A DNA stretch of 64,000 nt from positions 57,025 through 121,024 of the forward strand of contig FLMG01003914.1 of assembly GCA_900088475.1 (NCBI GenBank), in the 5' to 3' direction. The notes under the pieces were generated by a model, which was not told the DNA's origin, made no database searches, and saw only the letters and a program-made list of their open reading frames with translations. The stretch is from Hyphochytrium catenoides. Lineage: Eukaryota; Protista; Hyphochytriomycota. Of this stretch, positions 9,301 to 58,183 are shown one piece after another. A program made the translations under genes and the position numbers. The stretch's first letter is position 1. Every line of letters begins with the position of its first letter.

Positions 9301-12300
9301 CCGTCAATCAACTAGTAGGGAGAAAGAGAGTTCATAGCCGTTGCCAGCCAAAGATGGTAGGCGGCAAAGAGAAGAAGCCGAGCAAGACGCCTCCTGCAGA
9401 GAGAGATAGCGGCGTAACCCAACAACTTCGGTTAGTGGGTGAGAATAAGGACAGAATTTTCGACACCGCTCTTATAGGCGAGGAAGCTAATAAGACCAAA
9501 CGCTTCTTTGCTCCCTCTAGAGAGGCATTTGGCCTTGAGACTCTGAAAGACTATCGCGTAGGTGGCACTGTCCATGTGATCATTAATAACCAGATCGGCT
9601 TCACGACCCTACCGAAAAACGCGGACTCTGCGGTCTACTGCAGGTCACTCTCACTCTATCTCACTTTTCGTTTTGCGATCTACCATCGTACTGTTGATCT
9701 GCTTCACAAATTCTGGTCGAAGACCACAGCTATCTCTATGTTCAAACTTCTCCCAGCTCTTGGGCCAAATAGTTACGTCTTTCCTTCCTCTCCACGGGCT
9801 ATTACCCAGCTTGATAGTTCATATAGCGTTCCGGAGTTTGGCCTGGAACAGTTTGCTCTCCTCTCTCCTGTTCGTACTGGTTCTTGAGAAACCCCTTTAA
9901 CTCCTTGTCTTGCTCGCTTCTCACAGTGATGTAGCAAAGATCACCCAATGCCCCGTGTTCCATGTGAACGGAGATGATCCCCGGGCGGTGATAGAGGTGC
10001 TGAAAGGAGCGGTGGAGTATCGCCAGAAGTTCAATAGAGACGTTGTCGTTGACCTCATTTGTTACCGAAGACATGGTCACAACGAGCAGGTCCTCCTTCT
10101 TGGTTCCGATAACTCCTTTAGTCTCCGTTCCAATCCGCTGCTCCTGTCATGGCTTCTATGCGAATATGCTTTCTTCCCACTCTCCCTTTCCCTGGTCTCC
10201 TCTCCCGGCTTACTTCCTGTTGGCTCCTTCATTTCTACAGGATTCTCCAGAGATTACGGCCCCTAAGATGTACTACCTTATCCGCCAGCACCCAACTCTA
10301 CCGACTCTGTTTGGGAGACAGCTGGAGAAGGAGGGGGTCATGACGAAGGAGGAGAGAGACCGTGTCGCTAAGGAGTTCAAGGCTGAGCTGCAGTAAGCAC
10401 TAGCATGAACCCAAACATTCGCTCTCAAGATCTTGATGCTCCTAAAGTTCTTGCCTCTAATTGGTTTGTCTTTGTTAAATTTGGATGATGGGCCATGTCG
10501 CAAAGTATACTTTGGCTCCGTCCGTCACTTATCTCCACTTCGCATCGTTCTAAGATTTACCTAGAACAGTAGCTAGTTTCGGAAGGTACTCTGCATATGC
10601 TCTCCCTTACTTCTGTTCCTCTCTTTTTCCCCTTGCTCTCATGTATATGTCCATTAGGAGCGAGCATGATTACTCTACGGTAAACCCTACAGGCTGGGAC
10701 ACCCCAGCTGACAGACCCTGGGATGTGGCTAATCCATCAGATTCAGCTATGAGGTACATTTAATGCCTAGGGCATCCGTCTTGTCCTCGAAGCACTCCCT
10801 CTGCTCTCTCTATCCTAAACTGTCCCAAACTCTGTTGCTGATGCCATGACAATTGGCTGGCATTTGAGGTATATGTGCTATATGTATACCCCTCGATAAT
10901 ATTTCAGAAGTACAAAGCTGTCCCTCTTCCATTCTATTGTCGGCTGTGCTAGATTGGACAGTGTCTCCATTGTCTCATTTACTATGATCGCTGTGATTTG
11001 CCCTCTACTGCCAACCATCCCTACACAGCGCGTTAACTCATCCTATGCCGTCCCCTGCATCATTCCTTAACAATTTTTGGCAAATGCAGATGGTATCCAG
11101 AGACATTAGCTGACGAAGAAAGCGAAGGAGAAGACGAAGAAGAGGAGAAGAGCGAGGTGAAAGTCTTGGGAGGGGAGCAGAGGGTTGTCACAGGTGTCAC
11201 AAAGAGGACACTGGAGAAGCTGGGACGGCTAATCTTTGCCATGGCTCCAGAAATGAATCTTCACCCTAAGGTCGCACTTGCCTATCTCCTCGATGTTCGA
11301 AGGTGTTCCCTTTCGCAATTGGTGTTGCCTCTTCCGCCGCTTTGCCTATCTGTCTTCCTCTTTTGGGGCCTTAAGTGATCTTGCGCAGGTAGAGGCGATC
11401 ATGAATAATCGGTTAAGAGCCGTAGACGTGGGCACTAAGATGGACTGGGGCACTGCAGAAGCACTTTGTTGGGCATCTCTCCTGTTAGAAGGTAAGGATT
11501 AGAAAGTGCCTCCTTGAAAAGAAATGGGGGAGAAAGAAGGAGGGAGACGCAGCTGGATGACCAAAAGAAATAAGGAACAAATGCTAGAAGGTCTAGAATG
11601 GTTCTCCTGATGCTATACTTTTGGTAGGCGTTGATGTCAGGATCAGTGGTCAAGACTGTGAGAGAGGAACCTTTAACCAGGTAAGCAGTTTGCGGCTGGT
11701 TGGGATGAAAAAAGAGACCTGTGACTCTCCATTCATCTCTATGACTCATCACCTCTTTCGTGCTTCTTCTTCCACTTCCTATTTGCTCTGTAGCGCCACG
11801 CTGTTTTGTACAGCCAGTATACCGACAGTGAGGGTCTAAATGCCCCTCCCCGGGAATTGATGCCACTCAGTCTCATCTCCAATGAGAATCATGACGAAGA
11901 TGTAGAGAGAACCTTTGGGTAAGCAGGAACATGTAGAATAGAAGTCGGTAAAGAGAGACAGGGAAAGTAAATGAGAGGAGGCTCCGGCCATAAGAGAGAC
12001 GGAGATCGTGGAAGTGGGAGGAAGACGTAGTGATCACGCATTATGACGTTTTCTTGAAGAAGATAGGGGACTCTGCAAAGTGATAAAATGCGTGCCTTTC
12101 CTCCTATCAGTCATAGTCTCCGTCCGGTCTAGTCTGGCCTTGCATAAACTCATTCTTCCTTCTTTGCTAGGGTGCCGGCTGACCGGCGGGGCCGCGTCTC
12201 CATCTGCAACAGTCCACTTAGTGAGGAAGCTGTCCTTGCCTTTGAGTACGGCTACAGCTCCAGGAGGTAAACCCTCATGCGCCTCGGTCAAACTATCCCT

Positions 12301-14659
12301 AGCTGTGACTAATTGCTCTGTTTCCCTGGCCTTGCACAACTCGGCTGTGTTATTAACTCCCGTATCTCACTTCCCGCTGGGTCGGCGATTGCCCATAGTC
12401 TGGATTCGCTGACAATATGGGAAGCGCAGTTCGGAGACTTTGCTAATGGCGCGCAGATTGTGATTGACACGTTCCTCGTCTCTGGGGAGCAGAAGTGGCT
12501 CAAACAGAGTAATCTGGTGAGCTTTGGGAAGGTTGACTTAGAAGTTACCTAGGGTAGACAAAGCAGACAGAATATTACGGCTTTAGTAGAGGTTGCGGCA
12601 GCAAGTGATGTTCCATTGGTCCTGTCGTCCCTTAAGCTCATTATCACTCCTTTTCGTCTTTGTTCAACCCTCGTCCACTCAGGTATTGCTATTGCCTCAC
12701 GGTTATGAAGGGCAAGGACCAGACCATAGTAGCGCGAGAATAGAAAGGTTTCTTCAGATGTGCAACGATCCTGAGACGAAGACGAAAGAGTGGTATGTCG
12801 TGCTCACTGACCCTCCGCTTAGTCTACTCTGCTCAGCCCCAAGCGGCCTTACTGGTATCACAGCCCTCCTCGAGTACCGGCGCTTGTTATCGCTAACCGA
12901 CGTGTCTTTGCTGATTCCGTCTTGCTCTTAGGGAACAAGCATGTAAAGAAGTCAATATCCATGTAGTGCAATGCACGACTCCCGCCCAGTATTTTCATCT
13001 CCTCCGCCTGCACATGAAAAGGGAGTAAGGATTGACACCATCCTCTTCTTTTGCTCTTGGCCAAGTTTCAACTCTCCCACACCTCTTCTTTCGTATTCTT
13101 TATGTCTTTATGCAACCCGTGGACCAAGCAAAACAGTCATTTATTTCCCCGAGGCTTTCTTCCTTCTCTCTGTCTGTTGCGCCCCTTGTTCAACAGGAAC
13201 TTTTTGTATTGTTCACTGGGCGCTCTGCGTGCGATTTACCTTACGTTTCCACCTCCTGCCTTCCGACCCATCCTTCAGCTTCAAGAAGCCCCTTATAATT
13301 TTCTCCCCAAAGTATCTGCTGCATCACCGGCCCTGCCATTCCGATTTAGTTGATCTGTGCCCGGAAAATTGTAAGCGTTTCCTCTGGATCTCCTCTGTCA
13401 TTCTCCCAGCGTCTTCACTTCCTCCCTACTCGTGAGGAAGCTTGGTTAATGCCTCCTGCCAGCAAGTTTCTTGCAGAGAAGTATAGCTTTTATGCCTGTT
13501 ATTTCTTGTGAGCTTTGATGTCAGTCCTATGTCTTAAAAAATTCTTTTCCCTCTGTCCCCTTCCCGTCTTGCTTCACTCCTTGGCAGTCTTCCATCCTGT
13601 GCTCCCTGTCCATCCAGAAGACCAGAAAGCTCTTAAGGAGCCGAAGGAGGTAAGGCTATCTATGGAATGGTCCATTCTCTAAGGCTCTGGGTACATTTTA
13701 GGAAAACGCTCACCCTGCTAAGCGCTACAATTTACGTCTGCGTCTGCTATCGTTCTGTGGCTCCTTCTTGGTTTCCACGCTTCGTATGGCGTCGTTGACC
13801 GCTTTTCTGGCTTTTGACTTGATTCTCTCGGTAACCCCTTGCAGTTCGAGAGCCATCCGTAACCTAGACATGAGTTTTACTGGCTGGCCTTTTTTCAACT
13901 CGTCTAAGCAGCTTGTTGTCCCAACTTCTTCTGTTCTGGCACTATCCCATAAGGAAATAAATCTCCTTCGTGCTCTTTCTTACATGTGTGCTTACTGCTT
14001 TGGCTGGCACAGATTCGGCGACTCATTCTATGCTCGGGTAAAGTCTACTGGCACTATATTCACGCTGCAAGGACAAGGAATGTGAGGGATATCGCGACGG
14101 CCAGAATAGAGCAGGTAGGCTTTGGAATAGACAGAGAAGGTTCACTGATGAGTGGCCGCTAACCTGGTCATTTCTTCCTTTTGCTCATGGAAGCTCTCGC
14201 CATTCCCTTACGACGAAGTGAAGGAGATGATAGGGAAGTATCCTAAGGCTGAGATCGTATGGCTACAGGTAAAAGCTCTATTTCGATGTCCTTTCTCTTC
14301 TACAACGTCTTCTACTGATCCCTCTTCTTCCTGACCGTAGGAGGAGCCAAGGAATATGGGTCCCTGGTCCTTCGTGGCGCCAAGAATTGAAGCGATTAGA
14401 AGAGACCTCGGGCATGTAAGACTGAAGTACCTCCTCTTCAGGGTGATTATCACCTAGCTAACGCTTGGCATCTATCTAACTTCAACGCGATTCCCTCTCC
14501 CTCCTTGCTACCGTGCTCTTTGTACTGCTCGATTACCCTCGCCAGACCGACGTAAACCTTCGGTACATTGGCCGGCCTTCTTCTGCATCACCAGCCACGG
14601 CATCATTCGAACTCCATCAGCAAGAAATGAGAGACATTATCACTGAGGCAGTGGAGTGA
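6342..14659 (+). CDS. 2-oxoglutarate dehydrogenase E1-family protein (atypical), ~28 exons, Arg-rich mitochondrial-type presequence
   Basis: Exons join in frame at GT-AG introns and give [62 protein letters not shown]...[105 protein letters not shown]; stop TGA 14657-14659. Confidence 0.95.
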
Positions 14660-18117: not shown

Positions 18118-21100
18118 CTAGGCCACAGAGTGCGCCGGCGGAGAGGAAGATGAAGAGTTCTGCTCTTTAAAGAGAAGCAGAAGTGTACGAAGTCTCTCTT
18201 CCAGAGCTTCATCGAGTTGCCCAGTGGAGTCTATCACCTCCAAGACCTGTGGAGCGTGCTCGGCAATGTACCAGAGAAAGCCCTCTGCCGCTGAGGAAGG
18301 AGGAAGAGGGAGGCTACTTTCCTCTCCTGGGCTGTCTGCTATTGCCTCTAACTCATCCAAGAGCCCTGCCTCTGCGGCATACAGAGCGATGACCTCTTCC
18401 GATAGCTTCATTGCCTTATCTGGAGATTGCTGCAAGACTAAATAGCAAGGGTTAGACCCCTAACTCACAATACACGTAGGACCAGAGTTTTGAAAAGCGA
18501 GCGGAGGAAGCCAGCAGCTCTGAGTGGACTGGGAGAAGTTAAATCGCCCCAGAGAAAGAAGCGTAGGGCACGCCAAAAGCTTATCTAGCAGTATCGAGGC
18601 ATTATGGCTCCAATTTTCAGACAGACAAAGTAACCATGGGACCCATGTAAAATGAACGTTGGCCTTAAGGCTAAAATAGACAAAAGAAGCAGATACATAA
18701 GCTGCTAGCCACTTGGGAAGACAAGCGATATTTCTCTCCCGCGCTTCATGGTTTTGCTCAGATTCTCTCCACTTACCCATTTGCAATGCCCTAGACCGCC
18801 TATTCAGCCTCTTCCGAGCAGCGGTGTGATCCTTAAGCAGAAGGTCGCGAGCCGTTACAAGTTCCAGACGGAGCCCTCGAGCAACCTCCTGCAAAGCCGG
18901 TGGAGAGGGAAGTACGCCGTGCGCGCCAGCTCCGACCCTGCTGCATGATGACTTGGGATCTAGAGCTGGGCTATAGACAGAGCAGATTAGCCGACAGAAT
19001 AAGCCTGAGCTGTGCGGTGGTCCTAACAGGCAAAGTGGCTGGCTGGAAATCGAATATCGCAAACCTAAACGTTTGGATAGACAGAAAGAAAGGAAGAAAC
19101 GGCACTACCACGGCAGTACCTAAATCAGCATTAGCGCTGGGTACTACAACCGTCAGAGGCGTGAAGGCCGACTGAAGATGAGGGCCGAACTGAGATGGAC
19201 AACACACAAAAGAAGTGTTGCCTGACAGTAGGAAAGCATACAAAAAGAATGTCGTGGCCTAAACAGGCTCTATCTTCCAGGCGGGTTATCTTACCGATAC
19301 CCACGGTCGAAAAGCTGCTGGGAGAGAACTAGATGAGCATCGGAGATAGAGATCAGCTCCTCCACATAGCGACTTAGGGGCTGACTGCGAGCTGCTCGGA
19401 GGGCAGAATTCTCTGGGAGCTTCATCTTTAGTTTGAGGAGGACCTGAAGGGAGGAAGAAGAGACCAGTCCAGTAATAGCAAGAAAGGGCAATGGGGCCAG
19501 TTCTTAGAGGGTCTGCAGGTCCAAATTCTAACTTCACTCTCGCGCGACCACCACCAGGTCCTTCTTACTTCTACCTTTCTCTCCCCCATTAATTTCCTCG
19601 TAGCAGTAAATTCTCGCTGTGCTTTACGTCTTCATTAGCCTCTTCACTTACCTCGTCAGTGATCTCGACGCCTCGTACAAACAGTCGTCTAACGCGCTCT
19701 CTCTCTGACTCAGTGTACTGTTCTTCATAAAAGTCCTTCATATGGTAGAACTTCTTCTTCTCCTGCCCCTGAGTCCTCTCTGCCTTCTCCCCTCTCTCAT
19801 CCCCCCTGTAGTCAGAGACAGCCATCAAAGTAACTGTACCCCCTCCTTTCACTTCCTTAAGCTTCGCTGCCCTCTGTATGAGATTCGAGTAAAAACCCCG
19901 GACCTGGCCCCAGGTAGAGGCCGCCCATCCTCCCTCAGTATGAGATGAAGAAAGAGAGCTGACCCCTTCCCAAAGTCGCCGATATGGAGAGAGATCGTCC
20001 AGTACCAGGAATGCGTTCTTCTTTCGTGACGCCAGGGCCTACCCAGGGGCAAGTTGTAAGTGGAATATGGGTCAAGACCAGAATGGAAGCAGTATTCACC
20101 GAAGCCACGCCACGTTTTAGTAAGCATGATAATAAGTAGCGTCGCAGCAGAGCAAGACCGACCCTTACAAAGCCACATGTAAGGAGTCTAAGAGGGCAGG
20201 TATGTCTTTTACCTCGGCTAAAGTGCAAGCCACAGACGCGGAAAGGACACCGTCAGAAGCTGACGAGGCACCAGCCGCATTGTCCCTAGTAGGCGCTACT
20301 ATGGTCGTATAGTCCAAAATGTCAAGTTCTTGCATCCGCTCCACAAGAGTTGAGGGCGGAGCGTGGGGAAGAGCGTAAAAGCAGGAGACATCTCTATGCT
20401 TCTGTGCCAGCAGGGTCTGCAGAGCGATCGTTGTCTTTCCACATGATTCTGGACCTAGGAGAAGCAGTGGCAAGAGCAAAGAGAACGATTGAGGTGGCTG
20501 AGGTGAAATAGTAGCATGCTACATGGTAGAACAAGTAAAGGGTAACGTCCTGGTAGTAGTGGAGGGATTGTAAGGAGTCATAGAGATTCTGCATCAGTCC
20601 AATGTCTACCACCCTCTAGTAAGGAAGAAAGCGGTGTAAGAGGCCCAAAGCTGTGGCGGCACCGCAGTGAATAAAAGACTTATCCACCCGTGCTGCTGTT
20701 GGTAGAGCCACGTCAGCATGGGGAAAGGTGAATCATAAGAACTGGACGGGTGAGATACTTAGACGAGGAAAGGTAGGTTGCCCGACGCTGAAGTACCTGC
20801 TAGAAGGCAGCTTTGTCCTCTGCCAAGCGAAGTGAGGGCGTCTATGGCCGTGACACCTGTATGGAACGGCTCACAGATGCGATCGCGGTCCCACTGCGCT
20901 GGAGGAAATCTGAACACTCGCGGATGGTCGCTATCGAATTTCGCTTGTTCTTCTTTGAGGTCTTTTTCTAACTGTAGTTGCTCTTCTAGTGACAGCAGGA
21001 GGTCTTGAGCCTCTAGAACGGGACCAGACCCGGCAGGAATGGCGGTTTGTCGCAAGCGGCAATCTGCTGTGTATATTGAGACATCGCTGCCCAGTAAGCG

Positions 21101-21582
21101 TGAAAGAGCTCTTCACATTGCCAAGAACCGCGATTAGTCAGCGGCTATCTTCCTGACTCGTTCAAGTACATACCTGTATGAGGATGGTTGCTCGGCGTCG
21201 CTGAAGACCTTTGCAAGGTAAAGATGACCTCGTTGGTACAAAATGACGCCGTTCATAGACTCTCCAAAGCTAACCCAGCGGCCAGGATGACCCTCAATTC
21301 CTCCTCGGCCACCATCTATCACAGCCACGTCCTCAAAAAATGCCACCGTCTGGCCAAAGGCGCTCTGCGGCAAGGGCGATACAAGGCATTAACCAACCAA
21401 TGAGCAGTCACTCTTTGTTGGCGTCTGTGCATAACGATAAGCGGACGAACCTTTGCAGACCCGGCAGACGACGAAAAGTCATTGCCATATCTTGATAGAG
21501 AGAGAGGAACAGTGGCCTTAACAGTTCGTGGCACGGTTCCCCTACTCGCACCACTTCGAAGAGCTCGTAAGCTGGCCCACAT
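18118..21582 (-). CDS. Highly divergent F1-ATP synthase alpha-subunit-like protein, 8 exons, with mitochondrial-type presequence
   Basis: Alpha-family landmarks appear in order: RDRICEPFHTGVTAIDALTSLGRGQSCLLA-GPESCGKT (P-loop), FLVLDDLS (Walker B), FYSNLIQRAAKLKEVKGGGTVTL, ELISISDAHLVLSQQLFDRGYRPALDPKSSCSRVG, ALQEVARGLRLEL, LQQ...EEVIALYA. The N-terminus MWASLRALRSGASRG is Arg/Ser-rich with no acidic residues. Confidence 0.88.
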
Positions 21583-24800: not shown

Positions 24801-25093
24801 AAAGACCAATGACTGACTCTCAACGTCTGGTGGCATGATGAGGCTAGCTACTATCATCATCTACTCGTCGTAGCATCGGATGATGAAGCACCAACGCCGG
24901 CCCTGAAGCCTCGTCTTCTTTCCAAGTGAAGTTTTGGACAAGCTCTTTAGTTTGGATATCTCAACCGAGCTGTGGAACCAGTTACCTGCTTTGTACGATA
25001 TCCATCGCGCATTATATATTTAATAGAACTAGTGACAGGTCGAAGTACGCAGCAGCCGCAGGCTCCATCGCGTTAGATGATAAACAGTCTAGA

Positions 25094-27125
25094 ATGAGAT
25101 GCTGCTGCGCCAACAATGAGGACGACCTCAAGAAAGAAAGGTCAACCAAAACGGGAGAAAACCGGATAATCCATATCATCAGCAGTAGTGGTGGTAGCCC
25201 TCATCGCTCTACCTTTATCGTCGACGTGCACGCAGCACCTTCCGCCTCTTCTTCGACCACGGGGCCACAACAAGGAAGAGATCATCACTCGTCTACGGTC
25301 ATGTGGATAGACTTTGACGAGTCTATTTGCAGCACACTCCTAGGAAGAGAGGCACATCGCAAGTTTATTCGCTGTCTACGTAGACACCGATACCTTGTCA
25401 AACTTTCCGCTGTGACATACAACGTGGGAATGTGTACCGTGGGTGCTATGTGCTTTGTGAAAGATGAGACTTATAGTAGTGTCATCCTGACTATTGCTGC
25501 CCTTGCCGCCGTTCTGCCGCCAGCCTACATACAGATGGGTCTAAGTATAAATCCCACGCTCCTAAGGAACGTCGCGCGTAGTTCAAGCTACTGGACGTTC
25601 ATCATCTTTCATCAGCTCGTGTGGATAGTGGTAGCTACGATGCTTGGCGGTCTACGCGGCGTCCTCTACTTCATTTTGGGGCTTTTAGCAACCGGGATCG
25701 GTTGCTCGACTGACTCTTTCCGCTTCCGCTTTAGATCCAACCAAGGCTCTTTTTGGGGCTTCGTCACTAGCCTGGTGCTTGGTATTGTCTTCACGTCGGC
25801 CGCCGTTCTTCTGCCTCCTCCTTCGGGTAAGGAACTAATAGTGTGGTCTATTGGCTCGCGGCAGATAACGTCACAAGACATCATTGTTAGTGCCACGGGA
25901 ACATTTGCGATGTTTATCTTCCATCAAATATACTTATCATCTAAATGGCTGCAAAGAGCTCTTTCCAAGCAGCCTCCATCACCTCGGTCGGATCGGAGGC
26001 GTATCTCATGTCCATCTCTGCAATGGCCGTTAGTTCTTCAGCCATTCTATACAAACAATGAGCGACCTCCCGCTGATACAAGCTCACAAGTTGGAAAGTC
26101 GCCAGCACTGAGCTTCCTGGTACCACTTACCGTCAGTCGACCCACGGACATTCTTTTTCAGTCTAATCACACCCATTCTGATTGCTTCCGAGAGATGCAG
26201 TGGAGTTGGAAGCAGAGATACCAGACGACTTGTTCAACAACCGAGCGAACTCATCCCTTAAGAGTCTCCCACAAGCTGCTCTCTCCCTTCTTTTTCCAAC
26301 TGTTGATGTTTCTTGAGACGGCATGTGTCATACCGATCAGCTTCTATCTCGGCACCGTTAAAAAACTTTCCTCACTAGACCAGCTATTGTGGATCTCTCC
26401 GCTAGTGGCAGCCACAAGCCTGATGGGGAGCATTGGTTTTTGCATATGCCTCTCCATGGCATGGAATGTTGATCTGCTCCGGCTGATCTTGCGCTCATCG
26501 GTAGACTTTTGGTTTTTGGTGGTGCAAGTTGGGGCTCTGGCGATGTCTCTGAGTGATGCTGTGGCTTACGATGAACGCTCTCTGGCCATGCATTCTCTAC
26601 GTAACCTGTATACTCAGCGACGCACAACTTCCCCACGCTGCTGGTGATCGCAGGATGATCACCTCAACGAAGGCAATTATCGGCTTAGCTGCATTCTTGC
26701 CGCTGCTTGTTACGCAGTGCGCGCTTGTCTACAGCTTATTTTTCTTGGAGGATAGTCTTCACCTTCAATTTCGCACGTTGATCCAGATCACACACCACCA
26801 GGACGACGAAGTTGTAGATATGCCACGAGCGATTCTGAGCTTTTCGACAGATAGCTTCATAATCGCAAGGCAATCCTCCGTCACCCTGTTCTCATTGCCA
26901 GTACTCTATCATCTAGCAGTTCGCTGCGCTTCGTCCGATGGATCCGTTTTGCCTATCGTTGGACCCAGTGCAACCTCCTATTCCGACGGTGTAACCAACA
27001 ATAGAGAGCAACACCTGTATTTTCTTACTGGTAAAGCTTCATATCGGGTACCGAGGTCCCAACTGCCATCTTTGCCAGTCAATGCTAAAAGTTCTGCTAC
27101 TGTCTCATGCACGAAGGCTCCTTAG
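25094..27125 (+). pseudogene. Intronless multi-pass membrane protein with two-fold internal duplication, broken by one frameshift near 26580 (pseudogene or sequence error)
   Basis: Two overlapping hydrophobic ORFs (frame 2 to 26647; frame 3 26553-27125). The halves align: INPTLLRNVARSSSYWTF vs WNVDLLRLILRSSVDFWFL. The first ATG in ORF1 is at 25094. Confidence 0.7.
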
Positions 27126-27851: not shown

Positions 27852-30647
27852 CTAAAACTTCGGTCTTTGTTTAATTTCCTTCTCTGACGTGTCGTGGATG
27901 AGGATCTGGCACGGAGACGTAGCCGGATTGTGGTTTTCAGCGCCCTGTTGCAGACCACTTAGCTTACTTTGGTGAACAGAAAAGTTATGAAAGACTAACA
28001 AGACGGAGAGATTCTATTCTCCTTTTTTGATATGGAGGCAAGGATAACAGCTAGAAAGGTTGGGATGACGCGTTGCAATAGCGGCATCCCGAATGACCGA
28101 TAGTAACTGACCTTGCTCCAATCATAGCCCACAGCATATGCGTACATGTCTCCAGGGGTGTTGAAGGCGCCCGTGGTAATAGGCTGGTTACTGTGAGAGC
28201 CAAATAGGTCAGCACAGCAATTTGAATGAATGAAGAGAGAAAGCAGAAGCCATAGAAGTGACACTAAATCTATAAGAACCCTTACAAGTGTAAAAAAAGG
28301 AATGGAGAGCGAATAGCACACTGCTGAGATGAAAGGGAGCGGTAGGCAATGACGTCAGGGGACCATGGGTGATAGGGGTCATGATCTACTGCTCCGAAGG
28401 AGCTGTGGGCTCACCATCTCTGGAAAGCCTTCAACCTTTGTTTGCTATCCTTGTCCCAGAAGTGGAAAGCTCCGTCGGAGCCAGCCGTGCAGAAGGTTCC
28501 GAAGTGATGGAAGGCGATGGAGTTGACTGCATAGATCTCAGTCAACCCTCCGGATTTGGCTGGTTCACGGTGGCATTTGAAGGCAAACGACTTCATGTCC
28601 CTATGGGCGACAAAGAAGGCATACTTAGCCGATGGCAAGCCTGTTCCAAGTGGTGCAAGAGAAGCTAGCCAGACCGAAAAGGGAATTGAGCTACCACAAC
28701 TGACGTGGATGGCAGAAACAGAAAGAGCACTCAGACTCCGAGCACATAGGAACGATACCAATATGCCGTCCACCCAATAGGCGACTTACTGAGTCATTTC
28801 CTTGGGCCTATTGATCTCTTCTATGTACTGAATGGACACTCTGCCCTCGATAGAGCCTACCGCAAAGCCCGTCTTATCAGGAAAAGTGGCCACGCACCGA
28901 GTCTGGTGCTTTAGATGGCTCTTGTGGCTCTGTTGCCAACTGTACGCCTACCGACAGCAGCAGAAGTTAATGCATGGAAACAGTTCTGAGCCCGATAATG
29001 GGGACGGAATGAGCCAGACCGGAACGATTAAGACCCACACTGTAGGAAGATGTCGACGGGAACTGTAGGTAGATGTTGAGGCGAACAAAAACAAAGAAAC
29101 AGAGATACATGAGAAAACCCACATGGGGCGATGCTGAAGGGCGAAGTACTCTAAGCGAAACGGACAAGATACAGGCGAGAGAGATAGAGAGACAGAGAGA
29201 TAGAGGCCAAGGCTGAGGTCTAAAGATGCAATAAATGCTGCAAGGAGAGCATGCCGATCCTCCGTTACCTTGTAGACTTGCTGCGGCTTTGTGAGGTCAT
29301 AGACATGAAATTGCTTCTCTGCTAAACCGACAACTAATAGCGGATAGCGACAATCCATCGCATATACACGCTCTGCCAGACGAACAGAAAAGTTAGCGTA
29401 GATTGAAGCAGCTGTTGTTTGAACTGATCTCCGTTTTCTCAGCTTTCGATTCAAAAGCCTCTCTCTCCTTTCCCGAAAAGCTATGACAGCGGGAACAGAA
29501 CTACTTGCTGAAACATTCCATCTCTATAGGGGATCTAGTTTTGATAGGTCCCCCATGCGTCCGAGCATTGCATCCGGGTACAGGGATGACGTCCCTCACA
29601 TTTGCATTCAGCATTGTTTCCTCATCTTTGTAAGCCTTTCTGCCCTTCAATTCTAGTCTTTCCGTCGCAAGAGCTCCCTTCTTTTCGAAAGCGCTCTTCT
29701 AAGTGGCCTTACCTGGAAGATCGACACTACAGATGGGATTAGGAGATCTGGTATCCCAATAGCGCAGCCTTTTGTCCCAACCAGCCGACAGAACGCAATT
29801 ACTCATTTCCGGGATGAAAGCGACATGTTTCACTGGAGCATCGTGCTGAATGATAGGTGCAACAGAACTACGTGAGCAGGATAGGAACTCTCAAATTGTC
29901 AGTGAGGTATGAACAGGAGATAGGAATCAGAGGGGTGAGGGATGAGGGCAGGAAAATGGGCCAGGTACCCCGGACCCGTATATTGTCAGTTCAACGAGTC
30001 GCACAAAAAGCAGTCAAAGTGCAACAACAAGTCTCACAGTCCGCACTGAAGTTATTTAAGCAGGAGAAGAGTCCCTCCTTACCGCTCCTATTTGCGTGCC
30101 CTGAGTGCCTGCCTGCCCTAACTGCCACATTTTCACAGTCTTATCACAGGACCCAGAGAAAACTGTTGATCCGTCCTATACAGATTGAGGGGTCAGAGGA
30201 GGAGATCCACTGGCAGATGTAAGACCGCAGCCGGCAAAGCACAGCTAAGCAGCACGAGGTAAGTTCTGGACTCCAAAAGGGAAAACAGAGCTATAGAAAA
30301 CGTTTGTATACCGCGCTAAAGGCTGTATCTAACACTGGAGCTTGATGGCTGATCATCGCTTTGGGCTCAGCCACGATATTCGTACCACTCTTCTTTACGT
30401 CCCAACAGAGCACCTGGTATAAGCATAACAGATGTCAGTCATCCCATTGAGGACGTCACTTTCAGAGGCAATTGCCAACGTTCTCCAGTCTTTTCTCTAC
30501 CAGTACCTGGCTATTCCACGAACCGGCCACCATGAGGTTCGATGTAGGGCTCCATGATATAGAGCTGACACTATCATTTGGAGAACTCGGAACCTCATAG
30601 TCATTGTTTGGGTTGCCTGGCTTCGTGGCGGCTCCAAAGGCAGCCAT
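27852..30647 (-). CDS. RAE1: mRNA export factor Rae1/Gle2 (WD40), 9 exons
   Basis: The spliced model gives [133 protein letters not shown]. Confidence 0.97.
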
Positions 30648-56056: not shown

Positions 56057-58183
56057 CTATGACTGGAGATTTGCTACTGCTCTAACCTCCTCTGCTTTTT
56101 GGACTGCCCGAACCGTCTGTCGGGCGCGTGAGGAGGGACGAACCGTGTTCCCTTTAACTCCTCCTAGGGTTTCTCTCTGATTATCTCTCTCTTTCCCTCC
56201 TTGATCCGATGTGTCAGGGATATGCTTGAAAGCCTCTGCGTAGTACGAGCGGTCTAGCCCGTCTCTCGCTCCATGAGAGGGAAGATCTGCTCTTCCTATT
56301 CCTAAGACTGACGACGCTCTTTCTCGAACCAGGCCCTCTGAAAAGGGATAAGCAAGTTCTTGTTAGAAGAAACGTTGAAAGAAGGATAGCGGATACTTCC
56401 AAAGATAGGACAACATAGTTTGTTGACCGAACTCAGGGATGGAGAGAGAGACCGAAAGAGTGAGAGAGAGAGCGCGAGAGAAAGAGAGAGAAAGAGACAG
56501 AGACAGAGAGAAATAGAAAGCGAGAAAAACGAAGAAGCGAGAGCTCCGAAGAGAACAGTCCAGAGAGAGGTTATCGCCACATGTAACAAGGAAGGTGTGA
56601 CAGACCTGATACTTGGAGCTGTTGCCGTCTCTCTATTGCAGGCCCTGTGGCTGCTGGTCTATGATGTAGGTAATAGTTAAAGGAACAGCGCCAGCACAAA
56701 ATGGTCAGTGATAATGCTCTCAAGTGGACGGAAGAGGTCTCAGGCAGAAAGAGAGACACTGCTGATAACCAAAAGCCAGAGCAGGATCGTAGAAAGTAAT
56801 AGAGAGAAGGTCATCTGTCGCGCTCAAAGTCTTTCGGAGCTTCATCAGCAGAGTGGTTTCATAGGTTAGGATTAACAGTGAGAAGGTAAGCAGGCTGGGC
56901 CGCAGACGCTGCAGGGCGAGCCTGTAAGTCAAGAGTCACCAGCCACGCGTGCAGATGACGACAGCGCTGCGAAGGACTGAAGGTCGCGCAGATTCGATGA
57001 GAAACGTACAGGAAGAATCTGTTGGCGGACTCTCTGAGTGCCACTGCTCCTTCCGCCTCAAGGCGCTTAGTGACTTCCTCCAGCAGGTACTTCCGACCCT
57101 TCTCTGGTTTGCGCTCCAGGGAGGCAGCGTCAGGGTACTCGGCACAGGAAATAATATTGAATCCGTGAGGCTGAGACATGAAGAGATGATAGACAGAGGA
57201 ACTGCATAAGAGGTTGCCATGTGTCCAAAGCTCCAGAAGAAGAGAGTAGAGGAATTGGAAAGGAGAGAAGAGAGAAGGAAGAGAGTTAGGAGTTTCCATT
57301 GTTTTACCTTGTCAGCTTGATTAAGCTTTCTTCTTCTCTCAATGACGGCAGAATCCGGCTCTGTCGGACCTCGATCTTCTTCAAACCGCACCGAATCCTC
57401 TGACGCCGTAGCCGGCCGACGGCGGTTAAATCCTAAAGAAAGGATAGCGGGATGAAAGGACGGAAAGGTTATAACTTGAGAGAAAGAGAGAGAGAGAGAC
57501 AACGGAAGCCTAGAGAGAACAGCACTGACGTCTATGGCAAATCGAACCCAGGCCACCCTTGAATTTCAATGAAGAAGGAGAAAGAATGCGAGAGAGAGAT
57601 ATTTGACGTTCAACAGGTAGAAGAGATAGCTCTCATCGACTTTTGGGATAATCTACCCTTTAGCTCTGGTGCAATCCATCTCTGTCTCTCTTTCTCCCTG
57701 TCTCTCCCTCTATTTTCTGTTCTGTCTCGCTCCCTGTAAGCTTCTCTCGTCGCTTTCTGTCTCTTTCTCTCTCTCTGTCTCTCTCTCTCTCTGTCTCTCT
57801 CTCTCTGTCTCTCTCTCTCCCTCACACACACAAACGCAAACACATAGAGCGTCTCTTCCTCTTTCTCCCTTCTTCTCCTCCACTACTAATGTCAACACTA
57901 TATTCCTCTTATTCTCAGACTCGGGTCCATTGTCCTTACCTCTGCCAAACTTGCTGCTGACGCGGGATCCCGGTCTATGATCGTCAAGCGTCGTGTCTGG
58001 CGCTCTTAAAAAGTGCCAGCGCTCCATCTCGGTTTCTACTCTCACTTTCCCTCTGACATTCCTGCTCTCTACGCGTCTCTCTAGCTTGGAGAGCTCCAGA
58101 GGCGAGAGATGCCGAGGAGGAGCCTCACCCGTGAAGTCCACCACGGAGGCCGTCTTCTTGTCAGCGAATAACTTCTTCGTCAT
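56057..58183 (-). CDS. Uncharacterised protein, ~5 exons
   Basis: An in-frame spliced model gives MTKKLFADKK...SKFGR|GFNRRR...DSAVIERRRKLNQADK|YPDAA...ESANRFFL|PAATGPAIERRQQLQVS|EGLVRERASSVLGIGRADLPSHGARDGLDRSYY...EEVRAVANLQS*. The last exon frame is not in the ORF track. Confidence 0.65.

Follow-up and report, generated by a model that had tools for sequence, protein, structure and literature searches.

A stretch of 64,000 nucleotides from the genome of Hyphochytrium catenoides (assembly GCA_900088475.1, contig FLMG01003914.1, forward-strand positions 57,025 to 121,024; the whole stretch is hereafter called the window) carries a real and intact gene for a protein which is derived from the alpha subunit of F1-ATPase and has the three-domain architecture of that subunit. 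Judged from profile searches and phylogeny, this gene is a member of a distinct, uncharacterised family of alpha-derived eukaryotic proteins, here named aL. F1 alpha is among the most conserved proteins known, and to our knowledge eukaryotes are generally thought to have one alpha subunit per F-type ATP synthase. The conservation pattern of the aL family favours a role with a beta-type partner, and aL probably acts alongside ATP synthase, not within the rotating enzyme.

The gene lies on the minus strand, at positions 18118 to 21582 of the window, and consists of eight exons, from which three-frame translation and explicit splicing give a coding sequence of 1905 nt, encoding an alpha-like protein of 634 amino acids followed by a stop codon (18118-18120). 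All seven introns follow the GT...AG rule, are consistent in phase and measure 86-342 nt each, and in an unspliced reading a stop is reached within a few codons past every exon. Six of the seven splice junctions fall inside segments that align unbroken to homologues, e.g. LLAG/PESCGKT at intron 3 and VEITDE/VLLKLKMKLP at intron 5 (the slash marks the junction), and the junction of exons 1 and 2 is placed by its splice signals within an unconserved segment. A tblastn search of the spliced protein against the 64-kb window matched its own exons only, with no second copy. The first-pass annotation of this DNA had described an intact eight-exon gene with the landmarks of alpha in order, and the rebuilt gene, collinear with F1 alpha over its 634 residues, agrees with that description.

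The large database searches employed single exons and full-length relatives as proxies for the spliced window protein. An exhaustive HMMER search with exon 5 returned 13 proteins, 12 of which align through the insert (described below) and share the same architecture. When the spliced window protein was compared by blastp with these relatives, P0004, P0005, P0007 and P0011 among them, the identity was 28-32% over up to 500 residues (E 1e-30 to 1e-56). Word-indexed searches with the relatives then added more than 120 further members, mostly from diatoms, bringing the aL family to more than 125 eukaryotic proteins, spread over many diatoms, other algae and metagenomic protists. Records with a named source come from Pseudo-nitzschia multistriata, Nitzschia inconspicua, Fistulifera solaris, Cylindrotheca closterium, Attheya, and the MMETSP collections of Chaetoceros and Pseudo-nitzschia, together with the UniRef entry A0A7S3ZG94. 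Such records bear the automatic names “F0F1 ATP synthase subunit alpha” or [quoted passage not shown]. On first inspection the gene had been named a candidate for an undescribed system, and no paper on the family was found.

The aL proteins are well separated from canonical alphas by their profiles. In a family profile search no aL member scores below 383 bits and no canonical alpha above 252. The window protein reaches 347 bits on a hidden Markov model (HMM) built from seven aL members outside the diatoms and 315 bits on a whole-family HMM; an HMM made from 111 canonical alphas matches it in two pieces, at 152 bits. In full-length relatives PF00006 is present, PF00306 is found sometimes and PF02874 never, whereas all canonical matches carry PF02874. 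The same separation appears in maximum-likelihood trees (LG+C20), in which long branches occur and the outgroup consists of sampled canonical alphas, mitochondrial ones excluded: the aL proteins are split from all sampled canonical alphas with a support of 100 in the Shimodaira-Hasegawa-like approximate likelihood ratio test (SH-aLRT), and of 100/100 for ultrafast bootstrap (UFBoot)/SH-aLRT. The window protein, supposed from the first reading of its letters to be a separate paralogue, is thus placed in a strongly supported alpha-like clade of its own kind. Within that clade the diatoms and P0018 group together (98/94) and are joined by the P0133 group (96/92). The window protein is basal together with P0134 and P0004, in an order which the trees do not resolve; a clade of these three was neither recovered nor rejected (p-AU 0.26, approximately unbiased test).

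Compared to the other members, the window protein is thus a distant one, being about 30% identical to any of them and standing on a long basal branch of 2.3-2.4 substitutions per site. It keeps 25 of the 38 family-specific conserved columns and 35 of the 44 conserved columns shared with alpha, similar to other members; the family-specific residues in common include, among others, W308, R332, F334, Q340, D387-F388, R400 and D468. At 158 columns conserved in diatoms it matches a fraction of 0.48; the fraction is 0.42-0.64 in the remaining members from outside the diatoms and 0.35-0.38 in canonical alphas. The origin of the family was also approached: the family profile scores a chloroplast alpha at 217 bits and a mitochondrial alpha at 215.7 bits, and in the trees aL falls outside all sampled canonical alphas, not nested with those of cyanobacteria or plastids. 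A language-model search of the Atlas gave further clusters in Chlorophyta, from Atlas feature matches only, which suggests that the family extends to that group; a structure search of the same Atlas for aL returned bacterial alphas only.

Two further proteins were noted along the way. P0134, encoded at L001:3055-4992 on the eukaryotic metagenome contig ERZ27247933 (39.6 kb), comes from an almost intronless gene; its N-terminus is basic and resembles a presequence, and at its end the gene call seems to run into an intron. P0340, a public JGI protein of 1008 aa, combines a long, helical N-terminal part with a degenerate alpha-like domain, which keeps GDRGTGKTS and is without the Walker B and sleeve segment. 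It differs from aL in the kind of remodelling.

The derivation from alpha, and not from beta, is evident along the whole protein. Single exons match the NCBIfam atpA models collinearly, at model positions 115-168, 174-236, 253-320, 326-354 and 422-500; these and the exon-level Pfam matches (ATP-synt_ab and ATP-synt_ab_C) all lie below curated cut-offs, single exons having been scanned. Virtually all PDB sequence matches of exons 3 and 5 are to F1 alpha chains, and the best 60 matches of the family profile to the PDB are alpha chains as well, each in two stretches divided at the insert. With F1 alpha (Atp1/ATP5F1A/AtpA; PF02874, PF00006 and PF00306; TIGR00962) the window protein shares the three domains, GKT, the Walker B Asp, R-P-A, SRVG and the C-terminal bundle. 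It differs from F1 alpha in having no IGQK, sleeve loop or DVSAYIPT loop and no segment that aligns with the N-terminal helix, and its barrel is too divergent for PF02874. The motifs quoted in the first-pass annotation (GPESCGKT, ALPHAP, LVLDDLS, SRVG, a replaced sleeve loop and a charged insert instead of DVSAYIP) are all present as stated in the alignment.

These features are distributed over the exons, all on the minus strand, in the following manner. Exon 1 (21451-21582) contains the start codon and a basic, presequence-like N-terminus rich in Ser, Thr and Ala (aa 1-44), with no hydrophobic signal peptide. The bulk of the divergent N-terminal beta-barrel (crown) domain, which aligns with the barrel of canonical alpha, is encoded by exon 2 (21174-21364); the barrel follows directly after the presequence, and the alignment shows no counterpart of the delta/OSCP-binding helix at the N-terminus of canonical alpha. 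Exon 3 (20797-21086) brings the end of the barrel, a charged helical linker (aa 127-162) peculiar to the window protein, and the conserved HTGVTAIDALTSLGRGQ loop, as seen from NCBIfam atpA 115-168, PDB matches to alpha and the alignment. The P-loop GPESCGKT (aa 205-212, with the Lys211 codon at 20435-20437) lies in exon 4 (20213-20454), which on its own matches Pfam PF00006 (E=0.0026) and NCBIfam atpA (5e-7), in accord with the alignment. The same exon encodes ALPHAPP (aa 232-238), which occupies the IGQK segment and places His235 at the position of the alpha Gln and of beta E188. No Glu or other carboxylate stands there, and the early remark that the beta-type catalytic Glu is missing was correct.

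In exon 5 (19652-20038) the Walker B motif FLVLDDLS (aa 295-302, 19988-20011) is followed by SSLSSSHTEGGWAASTWGQ (aa 312-330, 19904-19960), standing in place of the proline-rich gamma-sleeve loop; this segment is longer and variable across the aL family. The exon also encodes the family motif R-G-F-Y-S-x-L-I-Q-R-A-A, the GGGT strand and the start of the insert, the end of which is found in exon 6 (19295-19443) together with the core strand LISISDAHLVL. Exon 7 (18777-18970) encodes RPALDPKSSCSRVGAG, with the arginine finger Arg475 (codon 18937-18939) set within SCSRVG, and begins the C-terminal helical domain. This domain is completed, with a Ser-rich tail, by exon 8 (18118-18437), which alone matches PF00306 (E=2e-5) and corresponds to NCBIfam atpA 422-500. 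The TG..A.DAL...G.GQ loop, the GGGT and SDAH core strands, R-P-A-L-D-P and the C-terminal helical domain are all retained. A kinship with FliI and the type III secretion ATPases was considered and rejected: the FliI/SctN matches of exon 3 are weak and due to the shared loop only, the catalytic Glu is absent, and an alpha-type C-terminal domain is present.

The insert (aa 360-443) occupies positions 19357-19816 of the minus strand, is split by intron 5 (19444-19651), and stands where alpha has its DVSAYIPT loop. In F1 this loop adjoins the arginine finger at the alpha/beta catalytic interface. The HMM of canonical alpha leaves aa 360-437 of the window protein, i.e. about 78 aa, unaligned against 8 model positions, a net gain of about 70 aa. 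The stretch from GGGS to SDG measures 108 aa in the window protein, about 39 in canonical alpha and 91-131 across the aL family. An insert of about 80 aa, new to this gene, had been proposed at the outset; the insert is real, yet its net size is nearer 70 aa, and it is conserved family-wide rather than being a novelty of the gene. In an alignment of 59 non-redundant members its invariant or near-invariant positions are F, D-F, R, L, T, L-x-K, I-P-x-P, H, L and S-x-S-D, of which the window protein keeps F..DF, R400, L404, T412, L416 and K418, with three family positions substituted. No known fold for the insert was found in the PDB, where the best match had a Z of 2.8, and its identification as a SAP or helix-hairpin motif was not supported.

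A structural model was obtained with AlphaFold2 (AF2) for P0133, a relative of 622 aa, from an input alignment of aL members, the window exons and canonical alphas. The mean predicted local distance difference test (pLDDT) was 85.8 and the predicted template-modelling score 0.85. Foldseek matched this model best to F1 alpha chains throughout, with target-normalised template-modelling (TM) scores of 0.74-0.84, and the beta-barrel is present in it. The best PDB, NCBIfam and fold matches are thus all alpha subunits, in collinear order. In the same model the insert (approximately residues 385-456) is ordered and mainly helical, with a pLDDT of 87-97 in context; the insert folded alone gave 67.9. 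Relative to F1 alpha, then, the aL proteins have an ordered insert of about 57-70 aa in place of the DVSAYIPT loop.

The most telling feature of the family is its uneven conservation. The arginine of the finger, which lies within a conserved D-P-x-x-S-x-T-R-[VI]-G motif, is present in all 127 aL members examined, sequences of about 30% identity overall, and the first Walker B Asp is kept in 125 of the 127. A GK[ST] P-loop occurs in only 8/127, i.e. in the window protein and a few non-diatom members, and 113 have no GK whatsoever. The second Walker B Asp and the GQK position vary freely across the family, and neither the window protein nor its relatives have a catalytic Glu. Since the finger Arg is invariant while the P-loop is mostly lost, selection appears to have acted on the face that reaches into the neighbour's site. 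The nucleotide site of the window protein itself looks alpha-like and non-catalytic, with GKT and the Walker B DD seemingly intact, both of which are lost in the diatom clade. The suggestion made earlier that the protein binds nucleotide may thus hold for the window protein, but not as a property of the family.

A comparable condition is found in the B subunits of V/A-ATPases, which are non-catalytic, can dispense with their own P-loop and give an arginine finger to the catalytic neighbour. The comparison with aL is a working likeness only, in that the finger is kept and the P-loop is dispensable, and the sequence matches are marginal (E 0.16-0.29). Membership of aL in the V/A-type B family was rejected, as the atpA matches are far better than those to V-type B.

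The N-terminal 44 residues of the window protein include 7 Arg and Lys, 1 Asp or Glu, and 18 Ser, Thr or Ala, with no hydrophobic stretch; the N-termini of P0134 and P0004 resemble this basic, presequence-like start. Import of the window protein into the mitochondrion is inferred from this N-terminal composition. The diatom members are of a different type. Their complete-looking sequences begin with a hydrophobic signal peptide followed by a small-x-small/F or W site (46 of 73 in a crude scan, and several more by eye), for example ...LHVQA/FAP, ...RTEA/FAP, ...KVSA/FSP and ...TSSA/WTS, with the slash at the site. We take these N-termini to match the bipartite signal of the ASAFAP type carried by diatom plastid proteins, which was reportedly described by Kilian and Kroth in 2005 and by Gruber et al. 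in 2007. P0018, the sister of the diatoms, likewise shows a plastid-type signal once its mis-called start is extended, and the window protein differs from the diatom members and P0018 in having neither the signal peptide nor the A-x-A/F or W plastid-type site.

Some observations on the public gene models belong here. In the P0018 transcript (L004:170-482) the public call starts more than 100 codons late, and the upstream in-frame part encodes a signal peptide and then ...VLS/FTV. Many diatom models, P0154, P0158, P0162, P0179, P0186 and P0256 among them, start upstream of the signal-peptide Met; automatic targeting predictions would therefore often fail for them.

A restriction of the family to mitochondria is not borne out, given the plastid-type signals of the diatom members. 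If both targeting readings hold, the aL family appears to be sent to two organelles, the plastid in diatoms and the mitochondrion here. Among alpha-binding partners, those evidently common to the two would then be the head subunits of F-type ATP synthase.

The relation of aL to the canonical alpha of the same cells is informed by an earlier survey of atp1 (PMC4824035). According to this source, oomycetes, hyphochytriomycetes and bicosoecids still have a mitochondrial atp1, whose rate of evolution in Hyphochytrium is ordinary, and a canonical nuclear atp1 is found in other ochrophytes, including diatoms. The diatoms, in which aL members occur, thus have a canonical atp1 in addition (PMC4824035). 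This coexistence, together with the separate clade, upholds the initial view that the window protein is not the housekeeping alpha.

On these grounds we propose, with about an even chance of being right, that the window gene is a functional aL member, whose product would be a non-catalytic subunit, bound through its finger face to a beta-type partner and active outside the rotary enzyme. The first-pass annotation had put forward an F1 assembly placeholder or chaperone, a regulatory subunit or a non-rotary complex as possible roles. The window protein would be imported into the mitochondrion by means of its basic presequence and may bind nucleotide without turnover. Its finger face, reshaped by the insert, would fit onto a beta-type catalytic subunit at the nucleotide site of the latter; such pairing is suggested by the invariance of the finger Arg in a family whose own nucleotide site is dispensable. 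The likeliest partner would be the F1 beta of the organelle itself, for which aL could serve as a beta-holding assembly or regulatory factor of that F1. Since the sleeve loop is lost, and apparently the delta/OSCP helix as well, aL would have no rotor bearing and no stator anchor, could hold neither rotor nor stator, and would be expected to work outside the rotary enzyme. More speculatively, and from two lineages, aL may be addressed to the organelle that encodes its own canonical alpha, i.e. the diatom plastid with atpA and here the mitochondrion with atp1, which would fit nuclear control of F1 assembly.

Several points weigh against this proposal. The modelled structure is that of P0133, a relative at about 30% identity and not the window protein, and the orientation of the insert toward a partner subunit is taken from the alignment. 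The invariant finger Arg could have a structural role. The presequence of the window protein has a weak amphipathic moment. The case for a separate canonical alpha in this organism is built on PMC4824035 and on the lost rotor and stator contacts, not on its own genome. No RNA sequencing runs are listed, so that the junctions rest on splice signals and homology. The best matches of the exhaustive exon 5 search reach 36-41% identity, so that no close orthologue was found, and a metagenome scan for one yielded a single spurious match with an internal stop codon.

The evidence may also be read in other ways. In one of them, unlikely in our estimation, aL is a non-catalytic subunit of a separate, non-rotary F1-like ATPase, perhaps paired with a recruited beta, in which ATP is used for a new task and the insert is the working or substrate-binding element. 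An invariant Arg finger in a protein that has lost its rotor and stator contacts would suit such a machine, as would an ordered, conserved insert at the interface, and bacteria provide a precedent in the F1-like ATPases of Mycoplasma, whose MMOB1660 and MSC_0619 models match exons 3-4 weakly. Yet neither the window protein nor its relatives have a catalytic Glu, the insert is without a recognisable fold pointing to a substrate, and nothing separates this reading from a simple beta-binding factor. The bacterial systems (the gliding-motor subunit MMOB1660, the MSC_0619-type alpha and the alternate alpha of N-ATPase) do set a precedent for alpha outside ATP synthesis. Their matches to exons 3-4 (MMOB1660/MSC_0619, E 7e-6 to 1e-3) are, however, no better than those of ordinary atpA and far under the curated cut-offs, and unlike aL these systems are without the insert, operon-encoded and equipped with beta subunits of their own. 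In its organellar form, which we consider rather unlikely, the aL proteins would belong, as the non-catalytic part, to a second F1-like ATPase of a non-rotary kind, located in diatom plastids and in the mitochondrion here and possibly shared with beta, in which the insert would take over as the working element from the rotor-facing and interface loops. If true, such an ATPase would parallel in eukaryotes the F1-like motors that mycoplasmas have put to new use.

It is improbable that aL is an alpha-fold scaffold unrelated to ATP synthase, which binds another protein or a nucleic acid via the insert and retains the Arg for structural reasons. The loss of the members' own nucleotide site in most of the family, their seemingly different organellar destinations and the several invariant residues of the insert would all be compatible with this. 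However, a dispensable interface Arg normally drifts in pseudo-enzymes, and here it is kept in 127/127 at about 30% identity; moreover, the insert has no nucleic-acid-binding or other known fold among its matches (best Z 2.8).

Very improbable is a decaying or functionless duplicate of alpha. The long branch of the window protein, the lack of a listed RNA run and the failure to find a close orthologue speak for decay. Against it, the reading frame of 634 codons stays open through all eight exons, whose splice sites are canonical, both the Arg finger and the insert motif are present, and family-specific residues are retained at the same rate as in other members, so that the pattern, a long branch with family-specific columns preserved, is unlike that of a decaying copy. 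Finally, it is scarcely credible that the window protein serves as the organism's housekeeping alpha and simply evolves fast: it does show the alpha fold, along with GKT, Walker B, the Arg finger and a presequence-like N-terminus, and some mitochondrial Atp1 proteins of stramenopiles (eustigmatophytes and Cafeteria) are very divergent (PMC4824035), but the gamma-sleeve loop, the catalytic-interface loop and GQK are all replaced, the family in which the protein falls is found beside canonical alphas in diatoms, and the mitochondrial DNAs of hyphochytrids, oomycetes and bicosoecids are reported to carry an ordinary atp1 (PMC4824035).

Elsewhere in the window, exon-like open reading frames (ORFs) at 9910-13000 on the plus strand show the motifs of 2-oxoglutarate dehydrogenase E1 (HVNGDDP..., RHGHNE), and probably represent an ordinary intron-rich OGDH gene. 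Exon-like ORFs at 28411-29454 on the minus strand contain WD40 repeats resembling proteins of the Rae1/Gle2 or Bub3 type. An unbroken ORF of 573 aa with many hydrophobic segments lies at 24926-26647 on the plus strand, which is unusual for an intron-rich region.

The present analysis points to a widespread and conserved alpha-derived family, hidden under automatic names such as ATP synthase subunit alpha, and annotations of algal genomes and metatranscriptomes currently list its members among the ATP synthase subunits. The family seems to operate in the plastids of diatoms and in the mitochondria of non-photosynthetic stramenopiles. Its pattern of conservation points to a hitherto unrecognised partner of the catalytic beta subunit, which may help in assembly, act as a regulator or form an alternative head.

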